A stretch of DNA of 64,000 nt from Basidiobolus meristosporus CBS 931.73 (Eukaryota > Fungi > Basidiobolomycota): assembly GCA_002104905.1 (NCBI GenBank), contig MCFE01000017.1, forward strand, positions 124,001-188,000. Reading direction: 5' to 3'. The notes below the pieces were generated by a model, which saw only the letters and a program-made list of their open reading frames with translations, made no database searches and was not told the origin of the DNA. Positions 4,181 to 46,080 of the stretch are shown piece by piece (the first letter of the stretch is position 1; each line of letters opens with the position of its first letter). The position numbers were made by a program, and so were the translations under genes.

Positions 4181-5999
4181 CTAGCTCCTCATCTGCCAGT
4201 CTTTGCAATAAATCCTTGCAATATTCCAGTGCGTTTTCTGAGCACTGCTCTTGAAGAAGTGCTGCAACCTCTTGGTGTGCCTATTAATGTTCCAAAACTC
4301 CACTGAAGGCATTGTGATAGTCTTTTGAGCTCTTGACATTGTAGCCTTGTCTGTCAGTGGGATCTCCACTCTGTCAATAATGGAGGCTGTGGAGGCTGTG
4401 GTAGACAAATTGCCTTTTTCAGCAAACTCATCTACCTTGCTGGAGTGTAGCTCAACTGGCTGCGCTTCCAACTCTTGTGAAAACAGCTGTTTTCTTGTTG
4501 GTAATTCTTCTTGGCTATGATGGGATTCAGTCTGTTCCTGGCTTGCGGCGTTAATTGGCAAGAACTGCAGTTTTTTTGCATGCCTCCCTGTCTCAGGCTT
4601 GTAATACATTTTTCCCTTTACCTTTTCCTTTATCACTGCCAGGTCTTTCACTGCTACTTTGTCTGAGTGCATCTTGCAAAGAACTACGTTTTCTCCTGGA
4701 TAAATTCTGCTCTGACTCATCTGTTTTGGCCTGCTTGTCCCTTGCTGGCACTCTTCTGGCAACCTGACGTTTCTTTTCAGCTTGTTTTGAGCTCTCAACC
4801 GTAGTTGTGATGGGCTCCTGTAAAAGTGGCTGGTTTTTATCACTGCCAGGTCCTTCACTGCTACTTTGACTGGGTGCTCTTTGAGTGGTACTACGCTTTT
4901 TCCTTGATAAATGTTGTACTGGTGCATCCATGTCTGCCTGCTTGTCCTTAATTGGCACTCTTCCAGCTGCCTGACATCTCTTTGACACTTGTCTGGAGCT
5001 TTTGGCCCTGCTTGTAACGGGCTCTTGAGGAAGCCACTGGTTTTTAGCCATGGCACCCTTGTTCTTCTGCCTTTGATAGTTTCTGCTATTCTTAAGATAC
5101 TTTCTTAGCATACCAATGCTGGCCCAAAATCTGTTTGCCCATTTGAATCCAGGATAATGCTCATGGAACAAGTCAAGTGCATTCTGCTTGGCCTTGAGTT
5201 CCTGATGGTCCCATGGTATGCTGGCCTTAAGGTGATGGCGTGCTAGACTTCTGACAGCCTCTTGTATATTAGCCCACTCTTCATTATTGCACTCAACAGC
5301 TTCATGGATCTTCAATGTCTTTAGATTTTTAGGCTTTGGTATAAACGCCACATTGTCTCCCTCCCATGCTGTGATAGGTTTTTCTGTGGGCTTCATCTTT
5401 GGGCACTGTTGTTGTGCTTCAAAGACTGTATGGTGTTCCTCTGCTGTTACATCAGGAAATGGCCCAGTTCTTGGCTGTGACATTGAGCTACATGAGTTCC
5501 TTCTTTGCAGCAAAGATACTGCTTTCTCTACCTGGGATATTGATTGCTCTACACATATTATCCGCTAATCCTGTGTCTGGACTACTTCCTGATTTCTCTG
5601 GGCCTTTGCATCTATCTTATCAGCCACTGCACCTAATTGCTTCATTAATGCTTTGGTATGAGCTGTCAACATACTTGCTAATATGGGAGGTGGTGATGTT
5701 ATCATGGCCACTTGCTGATCTTCAACAGAGGGTACTGCATTTGCTATATTCTCATCTGCCTGAGCATAATGGTCAGCTTGTGGCTCCACAGAGGTTCTCA
5801 ATTGCCTACTTGACTGAGAGCCTGAGGAGTCTGCATTATTACCTTCAATGGGTACACTGTCCACAGGGCCTTTTTTGGATGTAGTCCTGCTTGTTGCACT
5901 GAATGTCAAAGCAAGCTGTTGTCCAACCATTCTTCTGTTGCCGTCAGCGGTGGGGTTTGGTTGAGAACCAGACAACTTTGCTTTATTTTTTGGCGGCAT
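4181..5999 (-). CDS. Transposon accessory protein(s), divergent from the transposase (ORFs 5565-5999, 4593-5513 and the distal part of 4181-5056; probably spliced or decayed)
   Basis: Long minus-strand ORFs inside the TIRs. Basic, low-complexity sequence around a helical W-rich core (EEWANIQEAVRSLARHHL...IPWDHQ...WASIGMLRKYLKN). Confidence 0.55.
4633..4997. repeat. Imperfect direct duplication with a 207-bp (69-codon) period inside the accessory ORF
   Basis: Anchors tcactgccagg at 4633 and 4840; gcctgcttgtcc at 4729 and 4936. Confidence 0.85.
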
Positions 6000-6380
6000 A
6001 TATATGGAAGTGAGTCAAACCAAAGGGGAAATAGTGTTACATATACGCGTGTATGTGGTGCCACAACTTTATTTATAATGGTTACTATGGCGGGTCATCA
6101 TTGAATCTTACATTCATGTAGGTGCAATGTCTCAAATACAAGACTGTCTTAAGTTCACATGAGTATTGACCAAAAAGTGGTATAATAGCATTACATTGAA
6201 GAAGTTCAAACTGTTTGCCCCATGGACAAGACTACTTTGACTTAATGCCGTAAGAGAAGAGAAAAAAGACCATGTGGCTATTGTGGCAAGCCTCTCAGCA
6301 ATGAAGCACGCAGACAGCATAGGAAGTATTACAAGGATCATGGCCAGTGTTTTGCAACCCAAGTCATATTTGACCATTCA

Positions 6381-37863: not shown

Positions 37864-39022
37864 CTAATCGGTGCACCTGACGTGATCGTCATCGATTGTG
37901 GAGTAAAGGTGGCCTTCACCAACCAACCATTCGATAGCTTGACTAGAATACATCAGGGATAGGGATTAGTGCTTGCGTGGGGCCAAATAAACAACCATGG
38001 TCCGATATTTACCTAATTTCCGCTCTTCCGAACTGGCTTGATAGCTTTTGCGCGATGCTTTCTACATGAACACCTTCATTTGTATCAGGGAAAGATTTGA
38101 TGGCGTAAATGATCGCCTTATGAGAGGGTTTGAATTCATTGCCATAGACGGGTTCTGGTTGTTTGTATGCCTGATTTCCGTACTGTCCAGTTGGGTTGAA
38201 TGGATCTCCAGAGAAGCTGGGTTGGTAGCCTTGCTCGCCCTCATGCTTGACCTGTAAGCGATAGTGATTAGCAGGAGGAAATGAAGAAAAGCAAATGGTT
38301 AGATATGAGTAGATACATACACTAGGGTTCCGGGTGCGGAACAGGTGGACATATACGACTTCAAGAAAATGATGGGTAATTTCGTTGTAATCCTCAATAG
38401 GACGCATAGAGAATGCTACCACGTGTCTTTTGCTCGCGAATTGCTTGAACTGGCCTACTACCCTAACATATATCCCCTCTCTAGAAAATTCCTTAGTAAA
38501 TACATATGCACCTAAAGGGAAACTACTCCGAAATACAAGTCTGTTCACATACACTAATTGCGCACGCTTTTGTTGCTGAATCTCGTTGTCATCGTTCTCG
38601 AGCCAAGTACGAACATCGATCGAACCAGTACCATCCTCTACAATGTAAGAGACGTTCGTGGATTGCTCGGATTGGCGGCGGATTATACCAATAAATGTGA
38701 TCTACAAAAGAGCGATCGACTGTGAGCAATCTTGAAGATCAAGTAAGGACTTATTGAAAAGGCTACCTGGGACAATTCGTGCTCATCTACTTTAAAGGGC
38801 GCGTCCGCGTGTATCTGTGTCGCTTCGAGTAGTTGTTTGATGGACACTGGGGTGAGGTTTTGAGCAGCAGCACCACCGCGCTGCAATAAGAAGGTTTAGT
38901 AAAAAAAGAAAAGAATCCAACAAGTCGAGTAGTACCTTAGTTCCGGTGGGAGTAGAAGCAGATTCCCCGAAGGGAGAGCTCAAGAACCCACCTCCACCTT
39001 CGTAGCCGTTCTCGTAATGCAT
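37864..39022 (-). CDS. RFA2: Replication protein A 32-kDa subunit (multi-exon)
   Basis: GGGGFLSSPF, LTPVSIKQLLEA, YVRVVGQFKQF...VVAFSMRPIEDYNEITHHFLEV, winged helix EGVHVESI...AIEWLVGEGHLYSTIDDDH. Confidence 0.93.
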
Positions 39023-39181
39023 GGTAGTGTTTTTGATGAATCAAAGTAAACCTTACTAATTGATAACAAATTGCGTATTTATCATTCAAATTGCTTTTTG
39101 ATCTAAACAATTCAAAAACAAACAAAAGCCAATCCAACCATTGATGATGAAGGAAATATGGATCTAAACATGATAGAGTGA

Positions 39182-40301
39182 CTAGTAGTAGACTTTGAGG
39201 GAAGTTCTAATTGGCGCCCTACACAGAGGGCAATCCCGGATCTCCAGGGTGCATTGAGCACAAGTGTGGAAGTGGCCGCAGTCCTGAAGGATGGTATCCC
39301 GCTTCTTTGTTAGGCATATTATACACATCTCGGGGTCGTACTCACTGGATATAGTGCCTTTACGTGCTTTTACTATCTTTCGCAACATCATTCGCTCGCT
39401 CCATGATTTGTATTTCGACACTATGTAGGGATACGCTCTTCTACCAATCAAAAGCCCCAAAATGGCTGCGGAGGTCATGGATATCCACCAGAATATTCTG
39501 GCTGTGTTTGCCTGTCCATGTAGGAACTTTTTGAAGCTTTCTCGAGTCAAAATAAAGGGAAGCTTAGGATCATCCGGGGGAACCAAATCCAATATCATAT
39601 CGTTGGAGGAGCTCTGTGCTGATAACTGACCAAGAACTGTCAAAGAGCTTCCAACAGGGAGGATTTTGTGTGTAGTCTGAATACCAATGGGCTTTTCACC
39701 CTGAAGATACTCCATAGCAGACTGGCCAAAACTGTTAGCTAAAGTTGGCTGAAATTGAGTGTTGAGGGGCTCTAGGCTTAGTTTGCTTGCTAGCAGCTCT
39801 ACATCAAACTCTGGAACATTAATGGACAGCCCATGCGGGATCTTGTTGATAATTCGGAAGGACACCCCACGAATCGCATTGTCGATATTTTCACTTTCGG
39901 TAACCCTACAAAGACACAATTGCTGGTCAGGTTTTGTGAGCGAGATGCAGTGCTGGAGCGATTTTTGATTACCAACGTAAGAAAAGATTGTCCCAACGTG
40001 AAAATACCCTGTCAACCGTTGTCTGGATTCCACGCATCAGAACGCACTAGGTTAATTTCTGGAAAACAAATCTCGAGGAGGGTTCTCTTACCTCCTGGAT
40101 GACCCCGATAATCTTTCCTGAGCTATTTTCTACCTCTATTTTATCTTGCAACAAAGCTACCTTCCCTTCAATCCTGACATAATCTCCTGGCACTGCTTCT
40201 TCCAGCGGTTTGGCCGATACAATGGAGGCTATTCTATCCAAAGACACTCGATATCCATAGTAAAACAAAGCTGAAACAACTGAAGTCAAAGCTATATCCA
40301 T
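39182..40301 (-). CDS. MUL1: GIDE-domain RING E3 ligase, MUL1/MAPL/SP1-like (3 exons)
   Basis: N-terminal TM, YVRIEGKV...GVIQ, GEKPIGIQTTHKILPVGSSLTVLGQL, second TM (FWWISMTSAAILGLLI), RING CIIC...DCGH..TC..C...CPLCR. Confidence 0.8.
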
Positions 40302-40552
40302 GTGGCTATGACAGCTTGGAGAATACTGAGGGAAGGTTGAGGAAATGATTTGGCACGATTTTCGAGCTCATCAAAATTAGCCACCAATGCAATGACTGAT
40401 TCGGAGATATATTCTGTATCTTTGACCATAATGGAACCAGAAATTATCAAGAACTCCTTAGAAAAGCTTTGTACATTAAAAATTAAATGGAAGCGGGTAA
40501 GATAGTAAAGCAACAAAATCGAACTACACACAATATAAATATCATCCACATA

Positions 40553-43254
40553 TCAAGCCATTTCGAAGTAGCGCTTGGTCTCCCAATCAGTAATTGATTG
40601 CTCCCATAGTTTCCATTCCTGCAGCCTGGTGCTTCCGTAGTGATCCACGAATCCATCCCCAAGGACCTCTCTTGCAATGCTTCCATGCTCCAGCATCTTC
40701 TGGGTAGCTTCAAGCAGCGACTTTGGAAATTTCTCGGCTCTAGAATCGTTGACAATGACGCCCACGCTAGGGGGGATGGGGATGGCCTGTTTATTCTTTA
40801 TCCCCCACATACCGCAGCCGAGTAGAGCACCAAGTGCCAAATGCGGGTTCATATCAGCCCCTGAAATTCGCTAAAAACAAACATGACTAAGTGTCCGGAT
40901 GAAAAGTAGGCTCGACCGCAACTTACCACTTCCAAACGGGTGGATTCTGCGTCAGCTTGTGAACTGACAATCCTAACTGCGCTGTTTCTATTTTCAAATC
41001 CCCAGGATACTACTGCAGGGGTCCATGTGTTTTCACCAAGCCTTTTGTAGCTATAAAAGTGACCGAATGGTCAATGCGTTGCGACATGAGTATCCATACC
41101 GACTCGCACATACCTGTTCACATATGGGGCCAATATGGGCAAGATACTTGGCAGTCCGCGAAGTAGTCCAGCAACGAACCAATTCATCACCTGGCTCATA
41201 TCCTCCAAACCATCCCTCGGAGGCTCGCGCATCCCAACCTCATTGCGTCTGGAAAAGATATTTTTGGCTGATCGGATGTCCTTGAGAGATATATGCATTC
41301 GTGCTGAGCATCCAGGCATATTCTCCTTGGGTTTGGCCATGAATGAAGCCATTACTCCGTGGCGTATGCTTATCTGCTTTACAGCAACCTTGAAAAGCTG
41401 TGCTCGATCACCCATGGCTAATGCAGAGCCGTATTGCAGTGCGCCTTGGTAAAGACCTGGGCCTGAATTATACATCACAATATCAATTTAGTTGCAATCT
41501 TGGAGATCAAGTGTAAAGTGGTTGATGCATACCAATCTCGGTACAAAGGCTTTCCAAAGGACAATCAAAGTTTTGCAGCATCTGGAACAACTCGTTGAAG
41601 TAGACCTTCTTTTCATGCGATCCCTCCAGCGCTGTATTGAACAGGTCAGAAGTGAGGGGATCAGTCTTGAAATTCTTCTCTCGTAGTGTAAATGGTGTTT
41701 CTGTTCAACAATGAGAAAAATGACCGGTCCTGTAGAAGGGATTTCTCTACCGACCTTTGTAATTGTACCATTCATACTTGACGCCACATAACGGCTCGAA
41801 ACCCATCGAGTGATATTCGTGCACAACCTTGCCCAAGATCTGACGTGGACAAACGCTAACAGGCTGACCTTCCTTGGTGAAAAATCGAACGAGAAAAAAT
41901 GGGAGATTCTCCTCCCATGGAATCCGCCGAAAGGTGCCGATGTCTACTTTTGCGACAAGATAACTGTATCCTTTACGTTTTGAGGTTGGCTGAGTGTGTA
42001 GAAATAAGTGGGGAGTGGACAGAACGCAAACCTCCTATCTCGGGACCCAGCGAGGATGCTTCACGTTCGCTCCAGCCAAATATAGAGCCACTAAACCCTG
42101 CTCGGAAAAGTTAGGCTCAAGAAGTGATCGCGCGAGAAAACACTTATATCTCACCAAAGCCGTCGTAGAGCATAGACAGGAATTTTGTTTTCACCATGAT
42201 CTTTTCGCGTAAGACACCGTTGATATCAATTCCAGCGACCTTGACGCGTTCATCGCCCTTGAGGAGCTCGTTGACTCTTTGGACTTCCAACGGGTCATAA
42301 GAAACCGAAGACAGCAGTGGCTCAAACTAGCGGAACAAAAGCGGAACAGTTACAGCAAAATCCATTAGGCTAAACCAGCAATGCAGTTCAATCAAATCCA
42401 GTCACGAACCTCATCATATCTCGCAGGCTTCAGCCTTTTGGACATCGGGATTGGTGAAGAAACGGGTGGGTACTGGTGAGCATGAATAGATGGCGATACC
42501 GAATTAGGATGTTGATTAGGGTAATGGAATGCTGAGGGTTCAACTGGTAGCGGATCAGTTGACCCAGCCGCTTCATGATACGGTAGGTTTCGTGACATGT
42601 AGGATGAATGTAGATTCTGTAGCTTAACCTCACTATGCGAGGATTCACTTTTCCCTTGAGGCGTATGAGGAACTAAAAGTTTATGAGGAGTATGCGGTGA
42701 ATTTACAACGTGCGGTTCGTGCAAGGATGCTGAGTGATGCGTAATTTGCGATGCATGCGAACTTTCGGCCGCAGGAGAAGATTGCCCTCTACTCTCTTTT
42801 GCGGGACTCTCTGCACTTTCATCCTTCCCCTCTCTAAGCAACCTTGCTGAGTACCATTGCATATCGTCGTGAAACGGAAAAGGCGCGCCGTTGTAGCCGG
42901 GCTGAAGCGTTTCCTGGAAGGACGGGTTAATAAATGAGCCACGTTTCTCGGGTCGCTGAGTCTAGTCTGGTGGTTGTCCTGAAACACACGCATACCCTAT
43001 CCAAGCGCCTTATGGGAAGCTCGTACCTTAAATTTCTGCAGCAGGTTCTTCCACTTTATTTTGCACTCAAGCATAGTTCTATGGAAGCCAGCAACCTGCA
43101 GCCGCTCAGCCACTTTTTGCCACTGCTCATCGACTATTCGTTTTTTCGTGTAGAAGAAAAGGTCGTCAAGCTCTCTACGGATTTCAATCAATTTTTTGGT
43201 CTCAGGAGGCTTCCATATCCCGCGGCCAGCTTTTTCGCCGGTATTTAACAACAT
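40553..43254 (-). CDS. Trihelix (Myb/SANT-like) DNA-binding domain fused to a degenerate glutamine synthetase type I-like domain, 714 aa; exons 43254-43027, 42913-42410, 42326-42155, 42097-42032, 41970-41755, 41700-41533, 41462-41114, 41050-40927, 40870-40553
   Basis: Eight GT-AG introns of 54-113 nt give 2145 nt = 715 codons including the stop, with no internal stop. N-terminus WKPPETKKLIEIRRE...QWQKVAERL..GFHRTMLECKIKWKNLLQKFK|ETLQ...FPFHDDM. C-terminus KVAGIDINGVLREK, TFRRIPW, CPRQIL, ASFMAKP, SYKRL, SWGFENRNSAVR, RLEVRISGADMNPHLA, DWETKRYFEM. Confidence 0.85.
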
Positions 43255-45002: not shown

Positions 45003-45460
45003 ACTTAAAAATGAAGCAAGTTATGAAGGAGCTAATCAGCTGGTGGTATGATTTATTGCTAGATCAATCATGGAATTCAGTAGCAACAGATGAGTAACCA
45101 TATATCATATGGCATATGATGGGATGCATTAAATTTCCACAAACCATGGATTGGCCAAACAGCACATCAATCAATTCGGGCCGAAATCAAAACAAAGTAG
45201 TCATCAAGCGCCGAAGCACATATCATTTAATATACCCAGGATTTCTCTGATGATCAAGCGGAGAAAAACGATACAGTGAACTTTGCAAGTGTATTGAGTG
45301 TTGAGGGGAGTTTAAAGCAGAAAGAATAGGGTGGTACTAAAATAACAAAGGCTCATGCCAAGAGCGCATATATATCAGTAAAGGCTAAAATGTTGATTGA
45401 TTACAACACCAGACACCCCTTCTTCTTCTTAGTCTTTGTAAGTAAAGCGGCACGAGTAGC

Positions 45461-46080
45461 ATGTTCGAACACCTCTCTAACTCCATCTCCGCCCTTGGCG
45501 GAGCACTCAAGGTACTTGTAAGCGCCAATCTTTTGAGCAACGTTCATTCCCTGAAACCATAGAATATTAGAATGATTTGATCCGACCCAGATCGATACTA
45601 CTGAACATACATCTTGAGAAGAGACGGGCGATTGGTTATTCTTTCTAAGATTCTCAATGGTACGTGGATCATTACGTAGATCCTTCTTACAACCAACAAG
45701 GATTATGGGCAGTCCCGCGCAGAAATGAAGGACCTCTGAAATCCACTATACGCAACATCAATATCTAATTACAAGCCATGTTGAGAGTGCATTCGCCCTT
45801 ACTTTTTCCTGCACGTTATCCAACGAGTCGGGGGAATCTACGGAGAAGCAGATCAAAATAACATGGGAGTCAGGGTAGGAGAGTGGTCGAAGACGGTCGT
45901 AATCCTCTTGGCCTGTATTACCAAGCATCAATTAATGTCTGTTCAGCGCATGTCCTCCAGAAGCCCGAAACAAGCCAACTTACCAGCTGTATCCCACAAG
46001 GCCAACTCTACGTGTTTTCCGTCTACTTCAACATCAGCTACGTAATTCTCAAAAACAGTGGGAACATACACCTGTGTAGG
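45461..46080 (+). pseudogene. Probable disrupted gene of unidentified family
   Basis: ATG exon ([17 protein letters not shown]) with a GT donor, then protein-like segments separated by GT-AG candidates but broken by frameshifts and TGA stops. Family not recognised. Confidence 0.3.

Follow-up and report, generated by a model that had tools for sequence, protein, structure and literature searches.

The gene described here lies on the minus strand of a stretch of 64,000 nucleotides (contig MCFE01000017.1, positions 124,001 to 188,000) from the genome of the fungus Basidiobolus meristosporus CBS 931.73, called the window in the following. Its product is a protein of 714 amino acids (P0151) with the public name "glutamine synthetase/guanido kinase", in which an N-terminal trihelix DNA-binding domain is joined to a C-terminal glutamine synthetase (GS) domain. 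This GS domain retains only three of the six metal ligands although it is strongly conserved, and it is probably a pseudoenzyme.

Gene structure, domain composition and predicted fold

The exon model was derived from a three-frame translation together with inspection of GT and AG sites (coordinates in Table 1). The GS part comprises seven exons and six GT-AG introns and corresponds to the C-terminal 470 residues of the protein. All six introns keep the reading frame, as an earlier note on this DNA had maintained, and conserved motifs are partly interrupted by them (CTEI/GPGLYQ and likewise RLEV/R). With a linker exon and the first exon upstream, the nine exon translations match P0151 exactly and contiguously.

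Residues 363–710 of P0151 match the Pfam family PF00120 (Gln-synt_C) with 227.4 bits (cutoff 24) over profile positions 2–344 of 344. In searches exon by exon, pieces of the gene likewise matched profiles of the GS catalytic domain and GS-like proteins with solved structures; GS exons 1, 2 and 4 searched singly gave no meaningful Pfam match, and the exon-wise NCBIfam matches lie far under the equivalog cutoffs and are informative only as "GS-like". An AlphaFold model of the GS domain, based on an alignment of 45 sequences, reached a pLDDT (predicted local distance difference test) of 86 and a pTM (predicted template modelling score) of 0.90. Its low-confidence parts (model residues 61–80 and 171–180) are exactly those loops that are rebuilt in comparison with related proteins. 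Foldseek superimposed the model over its full length (about 465–505 columns, template modelling score 0.80–0.86) on class-I GS (GS-I; PDB 8tfc, 8s59, 8oon) and on NpaA1 (8wwu, 8wwv, 8x6z). The GS part is thus predicted to be a complete class-I GS fold with a β-grasp N-domain and a catalytic C-domain.

A two-copy model of the domain scored 0.69 in ipSAE (interaction prediction score from aligned errors), the best control 0.00; the applied mark was reached by 21 of 30 proteins solved as one-chain pairs and by none of the 23 that were solved as single chains. At least 98% of contacts are shared between the runs, and the pLDDT of the partner does not fall below 83. The interface is symmetric and formed via the C-terminal helix 698–714, and it resembles the inter-ring contact of GS-I dodecamers. 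As GS assemblies are already solved, the predictor may have reproduced known structures, and the score should be read as likeness and not as binding.

At the other end of the protein residues 13–95 match the Pfam family PF13837 (Myb_DNA-bind_4) with 54.3 bits (cutoff 27), and in-frame GT-AG introns tie this trihelix exon to the GS exons. Two further copies of the gene are at hand, namely the orthologue from Basidiobolus ranarum (KAK9728801.1 or P0001, 620 amino acids, locus L001 on JASJQH010006890.1) and a second copy from B. meristosporus that was found by a word search (P0152, 460 amino acids, locus L004 on MCFE01000078.1). The trihelix exon is conserved in both of them, with 71 of 76 residues identical in B. 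ranarum (L001 5602–5829) and 69 of 76 in the paralogue (L004 4844–5071). Conservation at all three loci also covers the last part of the linker and the beginning of GS exon 1. For the rest, the linker is rich in Ser, Pro and His and evolves faster (101 of 168 residues identical between the paralogues); the conserved part comprises its last approximately 25 residues, including a basic KRLKP stretch, and may represent a nuclear localisation signal or a docking motif.

Only one of the three public annotations shows this fusion. The B. ranarum model begins at an internal Met of the linker, although some 350 nucleotides upstream there is a conserved trihelix exon that has the same ATG (L001 5602–5829 and 5950–6450), so this model probably misses the 5' part of the gene and lacks the trihelix exon. 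In the region 4844–7726 of L004 the exons are arranged as in the window, and the annotation has two genes, a Myb_DNA-bind_4 protein of 251 amino acids and the "glutamate–ammonia ligase" P0152; the annotated start is at 6001, whereas GS exon 1 already begins upstream, at 5950. No Met precedes the conserved N-terminal motif of GS exon 1 in the window or in B. ranarum. This means that the exon depends on splicing to an upstream exon and that a stand-alone GS gene would be truncated, and therefore the B. ranarum model and the split L004 models look like annotation errors.

Active-site residues lost and retained

For the numbering of residues GlnA and PuuA from Escherichia coli were aligned with the fungal relatives, and the exon translations of the window were added as fragments. 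GS has six metal ligands, i.e. E129, E131, E212, E220, H269 and E357 (PMC6529630). Compared with GlnA, three of them are replaced in the window gene, E129 by Lys388, E220 by Gln457 and H269 by Arg506, so that the domain lacks two of the three ligands of the n2 site and one of the three of the n1 site. These losses amount to three single-nucleotide replacements. In all three Basidiobolus copies the six-ligand set reads K, E, E, Q, R, E and is not that of an active ligase; the combination of the three replacements is absent from both GlnA and PuuA.

The other metal ligands and the residues for ATP and glutamate were not affected. Besides E131, E212 and E357, also E207, G265, H271, S273, R321, R339, R344, R355 and R359 are kept. 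In GS glutamate is bound by E131, N264, G265, R321 and R359 and ADP by H271 and R344, and Y179 lines the ammonium pocket (PMC6529630). Within the set assigned to glutamate and nucleotide binding (E131, G265, R321, R359, H271, S273, R339, R344 and R355) no residue has been changed.

In a wider scan 117 canonical relatives of 440–560 amino acids were aligned, and columns with at least 93% identity were considered as conserved. Columns 129, 220 and 269 contain E, E and H in 116–117 of the 117 sequences, and the replacements in Basidiobolus are far from what chance would give. The Basidiobolus copies deviate at 27–28 of the 125 conserved columns compared with a median of 1 among canonical members, and 8 of the 38 strictly invariant columns are replaced: C304S, D311S/G (the Asp of the FGWD motif), D314E, D327Y (D64 of GlnA), H448C (H210 of GlnA), E457Q, G505A, directly adjoining the H269R replacement, and position 506 with Arg for His. 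E388K and G285E are also changed, and the loop around Y179 was rebuilt throughout (G414, G417, Y418, S419, R422). The replacements thus cluster at the metal sites and on the amine side, and the phosphate and glutamate side is unchanged.

The earlier note had read the domain as a pseudoenzyme from a handful of motifs (GVKYEW, CTEIGPGLYQ, GCSARMH, IFGWS and DINGVLREK), all of which were recovered on the minus strand where it had placed them. Its three metal-ligand replacements hold in the alignment with GlnA, and so does the retention of SYKRL, ENRNSAVR and RLEVR, which contain R321, R339, R344, R355, E357 and R359. Two details had to be revised. In the column of the catalytic D50 of GlnA the family has Phe, and no D50 equivalent can be assigned; the Asp of IFGWD stands elsewhere in the alignment and is a family-specific invariant residue, found in 117 of 117 canonical relatives and also in PuuA. 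Moreover, the Asp to Asn change in the DxDG motif has no diagnostic value, as the paralogue has DIDG and the active PuuA shows the same change. On the other hand, the changes H210 to Cys and D64 to Tyr, the dismantled Y179 loop and the Gly to Ala exchange next to H269R had escaped notice.

Table 1. Positions of the exons, introns and functional residues of the trihelix–GS gene and of neighbouring genes in the window
Feature	Position	Strand	Remarks
First exon, trihelix (Myb_DNA-bind_4)	43027..43254	-	ATG 43254; Pfam PF13837
Intron, first exon to linker exon	43026-42914	-	113 nucleotides
Linker exon	42410..42913	-	168 amino acids, low complexity; conserved end PMSKRLKPARYDE; pN/pS-based omega 0.087
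Intron, linker exon to GS exon 1	42409-42327	-	83 nucleotides, phase 0, GT-AG
GS part, all seven exons	40553-42326	-	C-terminal 470 residues
GS exon 1	42155..42326	-	β-grasp start; DINGVLREK 42227-42201; exact match to P0151 residues 245-301; maximum-likelihood omega 0.004-0.022
GS exon 2	42032..42097	-	IFGWSERE 42083-42060 (IFGWS 42083-42069); Asp of FGWD replaced by Ser, codon 42071-42069; Gly in the other two copies
GS exon 3	41755..41970	-	D64 equivalent replaced by Tyr, codon 41962-41960; GVKYEW 41785-41768
GS exon 3, metal site	41779-41777	-	n2 ligand E129 replaced by Lys388; E131 kept
GS exon 4	41533..41700	-	Y179 (ammonium-pocket) loop dismantled, 41647-41621; CTEI 41545-41534
GS exon 4, CTE	41545-41543	-	H210 replaced by Cys448; E212 kept
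GS exon 5	41114..41462	-	Pfam Gln-synt_C 5.8e-20 and PDB alignments; GPGLYQ 41460-41446; GCSARMH 41313-41293
GS exon 5, metal sites	41448-41446, 41301-41299	-	n1 ligand E220 replaced by Gln457; n2 ligand H269 replaced by Arg506; H271, S273 kept
GS exon 6	40927..41050	-	SYKRL (R321), ENRNSAVR (R339, R344), TRLEV (R355, E357) all kept
GS exon 7	40553..40870	-	Stop TAA 40555-40553; R359 kept; C-terminal helix, predicted two-fold interface
Six introns within the GS domain	42154-42098, 42031-41971, 41754-41701, 41532-41463, 41113-41051, 40926-40871	-	GT-AG; 54-70 nucleotides; phases 1, 1, 1, 1, 2, 0
GIDE and RING (MUL1-like) E3 ligase gene	39182-40302	-
RPA2-like (RPA_C) gene	37865-39027	-
Ras-family GTPase gene	45401-45917	-

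Selection, phylogeny and related loci

Codons of the three Basidiobolus copies were aligned exon by exon and the counts were summed over the exons (462 codons, split codons skipped). DNA identity is 44–49% at third positions versus 94–97% at second positions. The proportion of synonymous differences (pS) is 0.78–0.86 and thus saturated, i.e. above the value of 0.75 beyond which the Jukes–Cantor synonymous distance dS is not computable, and absolute dS values are unreliable. The proportion of nonsynonymous differences (pN) is 0.06–0.09, which gives a pN/pS of 0.08–0.10, and maximum-likelihood omega per exon amounts to 0.004–0.076. The protein is under strong purifying selection, and the dN/dS ratio, for which the earlier note had asked, is far below 1. 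Even the replacing residues are maintained through synonymous changes, with the codons AAG/AAA/AAG for Lys and CGA/CGA/CGT for Arg in the three copies, and the same holds true for the retained Arg residues. By contrast, the position of the FGWD Asp holds Ser, Gly and Gly in the three copies, the kind of variation to be expected once a site has lost its importance.

A search of the full library with phmmer and exon 5 as query found only one near-identical protein, the B. ranarum orthologue (94% over the exon). All remaining matches have at most 52% identity and canonical HTExGPGxYE and GCSGHxH motifs, and among the 150 best representatives of the library of 1.84 billion proteins only this orthologue deviates at the three columns. 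The same search also matched two very long predicted proteins, P0002 (4424 amino acids) and P0024 (2757 amino acids), with up to six separate GS-like stretches, the motif HHEVAPGQYE and canonical ligands; they could be tandem multi-GS polyproteins or gene-model artefacts. The K, Q, R, C and Y replacements are common to the window gene, to its B. ranarum orthologue and to the paralogue. As they occur at three loci and in two Basidiobolus species, they are not private to this assembly, a case that the earlier note had left to be checked.

The B. ranarum locus is syntenic with the window and shares its neighbours on either side, namely a Ras-like GTPase gene upstream and, downstream, one GIDE/RING and one RPA2-like gene. 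The paralogous locus L004 shares only the GTPase side of this neighbourhood, a pattern that would fit an old duplication of a segment or of the whole genome.

A quick IQ-TREE reconstruction of 42 sequences largely follows the fungal phylogeny, and the family was thus inherited vertically. The Basidiobolus sequences form a clade inside the fungal radiation (SH-aLRT, the Shimodaira–Hasegawa-like approximate likelihood ratio test, 100) with a stem of 1.01 substitutions per site and crown branches of only 0.025–0.083. Such a long stem with a short crown points to a burst of change that was followed by tight conservation. Within the clade the paralogue is sister to the window copy plus B. ranarum (SH-aLRT 97), which places the duplication earlier than the split of the two species. 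Among the 120 best matches of a canonical zoopagomycete query no canonical Basidiobolus member was found, which suggests, without proving it, that the degenerate form has replaced the canonical enzyme rather than joined it. A "glutamine synthetase family protein" of the Bacteroidota member Aurantibacter crassamenti (P0224) with 45% identity to the Basidiobolus domain is placed on a long branch inside the fungal radiation; this could reflect a transfer between fungus and bacterium or a long-branch misplacement.

Putative function and related systems

We consider it probable, at roughly 0.65, that the GS part is a pseudoenzyme which has lost the two-metal ligase chemistry and is kept as a ligand-binding and/or oligomerising module of a trihelix DNA-binding protein. 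As the domain is strongly conserved despite the loss of half of its metal ligands and resides in the same gene as a DNA-binding domain, an enzyme fold has probably become a regulatory module. By vertical descent the domain derives from a GS-I-like family that occurs widely in fungi. Along the stem branch of the genus it lost the n2 metal site (E129K, H269R) and one n1 ligand (E220Q) together with the amine pocket (FGWD Asp, Y179 loop, D64, H210), whereas the residues for binding of the nucleotide phosphates and of the glutamate backbone were retained. Lys388 and Arg506 may fill the place of the n2 metal beside the retained equivalent of Glu357. Two-metal, ATP-dependent γ-glutamyl ligation would no longer be performed, and the domain would serve as non-catalytic module of a nuclear DNA-binding protein, either by sensing a ligand (nucleotide, glutamate or glutamine) or by forming GS-type oligomers that present several DNA-binding domains; the two roles are compatible. 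The proposal of the earlier note is thus partly supported, as the fold is intact, half of the metal ligands are gone, dN/dS is low and the substitutions are shared between loci. As the note had also suggested, Lys and Arg might make up for the charge of the missing metal, and the domain might still bind ligands while being catalytically dead. The note had, however, taken the domain in isolation although this is only the C-terminal part of a trihelix fusion.

Several points speak against this reading. Gln can still ligate a metal, so an n1 site formed by E131, E212 and Q457 may persist, and Lys and Arg could in principle take over phosphate handling, which would allow residual or altered catalysis. 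The conserved ATP- and glutamate-binding residues fit an enzyme as well as a sensor, and the loss of catalysis is predicted from the residues. Concerning the fusion, two of the three public annotations lack it (B. ranarum begins in the linker and the paralogue is split), and the junction between linker and GS as well as expression rest on comparative evidence and on a public gene model.

The domain could also still be an enzyme with altered chemistry, in which Lys388 and Arg506 hold the ATP phosphates in place of the n2 metal, one n1 metal is bound by E131, E212 and Q457 and a new substrate fits into the rebuilt amine pocket. In active GS-like ligases it is indeed the amine pocket that varies (PMC6529630, PMC11335346). 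Strong purifying selection maintains three metal ligands and the residues that bind ATP and glutamate, and in each of the three copies it is specifically cationic residues that take the place of the two n2 ligands. Nevertheless, we regard such an enzyme as unlikely, because every characterised active member and the 117 aligned canonical relatives keep all six ligands, because the family-invariant H210, D64 and FGWD Asp were lost as well, the last with the variation between Ser and Gly described above, and because a DNA-binding domain is part of the same protein. Alternatively, the fold might be kept only as a scaffold for hexamers or dodecamers of the trihelix protein, with irrelevant pockets and with Arg and Glu residues retained for structural reasons. 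The homodimer model with its interface via the C-terminal helix agrees with this, and lengsin is a non-catalytic GS-I dodecamer. However, a mere scaffold is not expected to keep its phosphate- and glutamate-binding residues selectively while the neighbouring metal and amine residues disappear, and the complex score may echo GS assemblies that are already solved; on balance this explanation has a low probability.

Loss of catalytic residues would also be expected from a decaying pseudogene, and the disagreement of two related-locus annotations on the gene structure could hint at an assembly or annotation artefact. Yet an intact frame runs through all seven exons, the splice sites are canonical and the fold is predicted with confidence; the same substitutions appear at three loci in two assemblies, and omega does not exceed 0.1, with synonymous sites being saturated. 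On account of the low omega and of the substitutions common to three loci this explanation was rejected as having practically no chance of being correct. A more specific form of the pseudoenzyme reading is conceivable and is put forward here only tentatively, namely a eukaryotic one-component sensor of nitrogen or energy status. The Lys/Arg pair would take the n2 place, a nucleotide and Glu or Gln would be bound without turnover, and the ligand state or ring assembly would switch the fused trihelix domain, so that a covalent counterpart of the bacterial GS–GlnR/TnrA pairs would have arisen independently in Basidiobolus.

The closest relatives are found in the canonical fungal GS-I-like family ("type-1 glutamine synthetase 2" or "glutamine synthetase/guanido kinase", 450–530 amino acids), with members for example in Thamnocephalis (P0159), Mortierella, Rhizophagus, Mucor and Aspergillus. 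It shares 44–49% identity over the whole domain, has the same length and fold and is the parent of the Basidiobolus genes. In contrast with these, the 117 aligned relatives all keep E129, E220, H269, H210, D64 and the FGWD Asp, and none of the listed members carries a trihelix domain. In the literature searched no function for this family was found; a paper on GLN of M. oryzae was set aside since it is not clearly about the fungal GS-I-like family. Searches for trihelix and GS in fungi and for Basidiobolus and GS returned nothing relevant.

Among solved proteins the best matches in sequence and structure are GS-like γ-glutamyl-amine ligases, i.e. PuuA, PauA7, GlnA3/GlnA4, GmaS (9qur, 7cql) and NpaA1 (8wwu). 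The Basidiobolus domain shares with them the absence of D50 and, with PauA7, Trp at the E327-flap position. They differ in having all six ligands and two bound Mn or Mg ions, compared with three ligands in Basidiobolus: the set is complete in the active GS-like PauA7 and GlnA4 (PMC6529630), in NpaA1 (PMC11335346) and, according to our alignment, in E. coli PuuA.

In functional terms other systems offer analogies. GS from Bacillus and Paenibacillus acts on GlnR/TnrA (PDB 7tfa, a complex of GS, Gln and a GlnR peptide, is among the fold matches), and here the ligand state of a GS-I assembly controls a DNA-binding protein. That GS is a working enzyme with a non-covalent partner, whereas the GS fold of Basidiobolus looks inactive and is covalently fused; the functional parallel is one that we infer.

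GS-fold pseudoenzymes are rare, with lengsin as the textbook case. In this protein of the vertebrate lens the GS-I fold reportedly has a non-catalytic role. It resembles the Basidiobolus domain by analogy only, as a eukaryotic class-I GS fold without activity, and differs by its metazoan lineage, its function as structural lens protein and the lack of a DNA-binding domain. FluG of Aspergillus and NodGS of plants are eukaryotic GS-I-like fusion proteins that act in development rather than in assimilation, and their fusion partner is an N-terminal amidohydrolase-type domain and not a trihelix domain. To our knowledge, and in the literature searched, no GS-fold pseudoenzyme fused to a sequence-specific DNA-binding domain has been known, and as far as seen the putative combination of both is restricted to Basidiobolus.

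Two public annotations would be corrected by this analysis, the B. ranarum model without trihelix exon and the B. meristosporus paralogue split in two genes. Catalytic residues were lost cleanly and long ago, this state is strongly maintained, and nearly every other fungal lineage offers a canonical counterpart for comparison. This makes the Basidiobolus genes a tractable natural experiment on how an ATP-dependent ligase may become a binding or scaffolding module and on whether cationic side chains can replace a catalytic metal.

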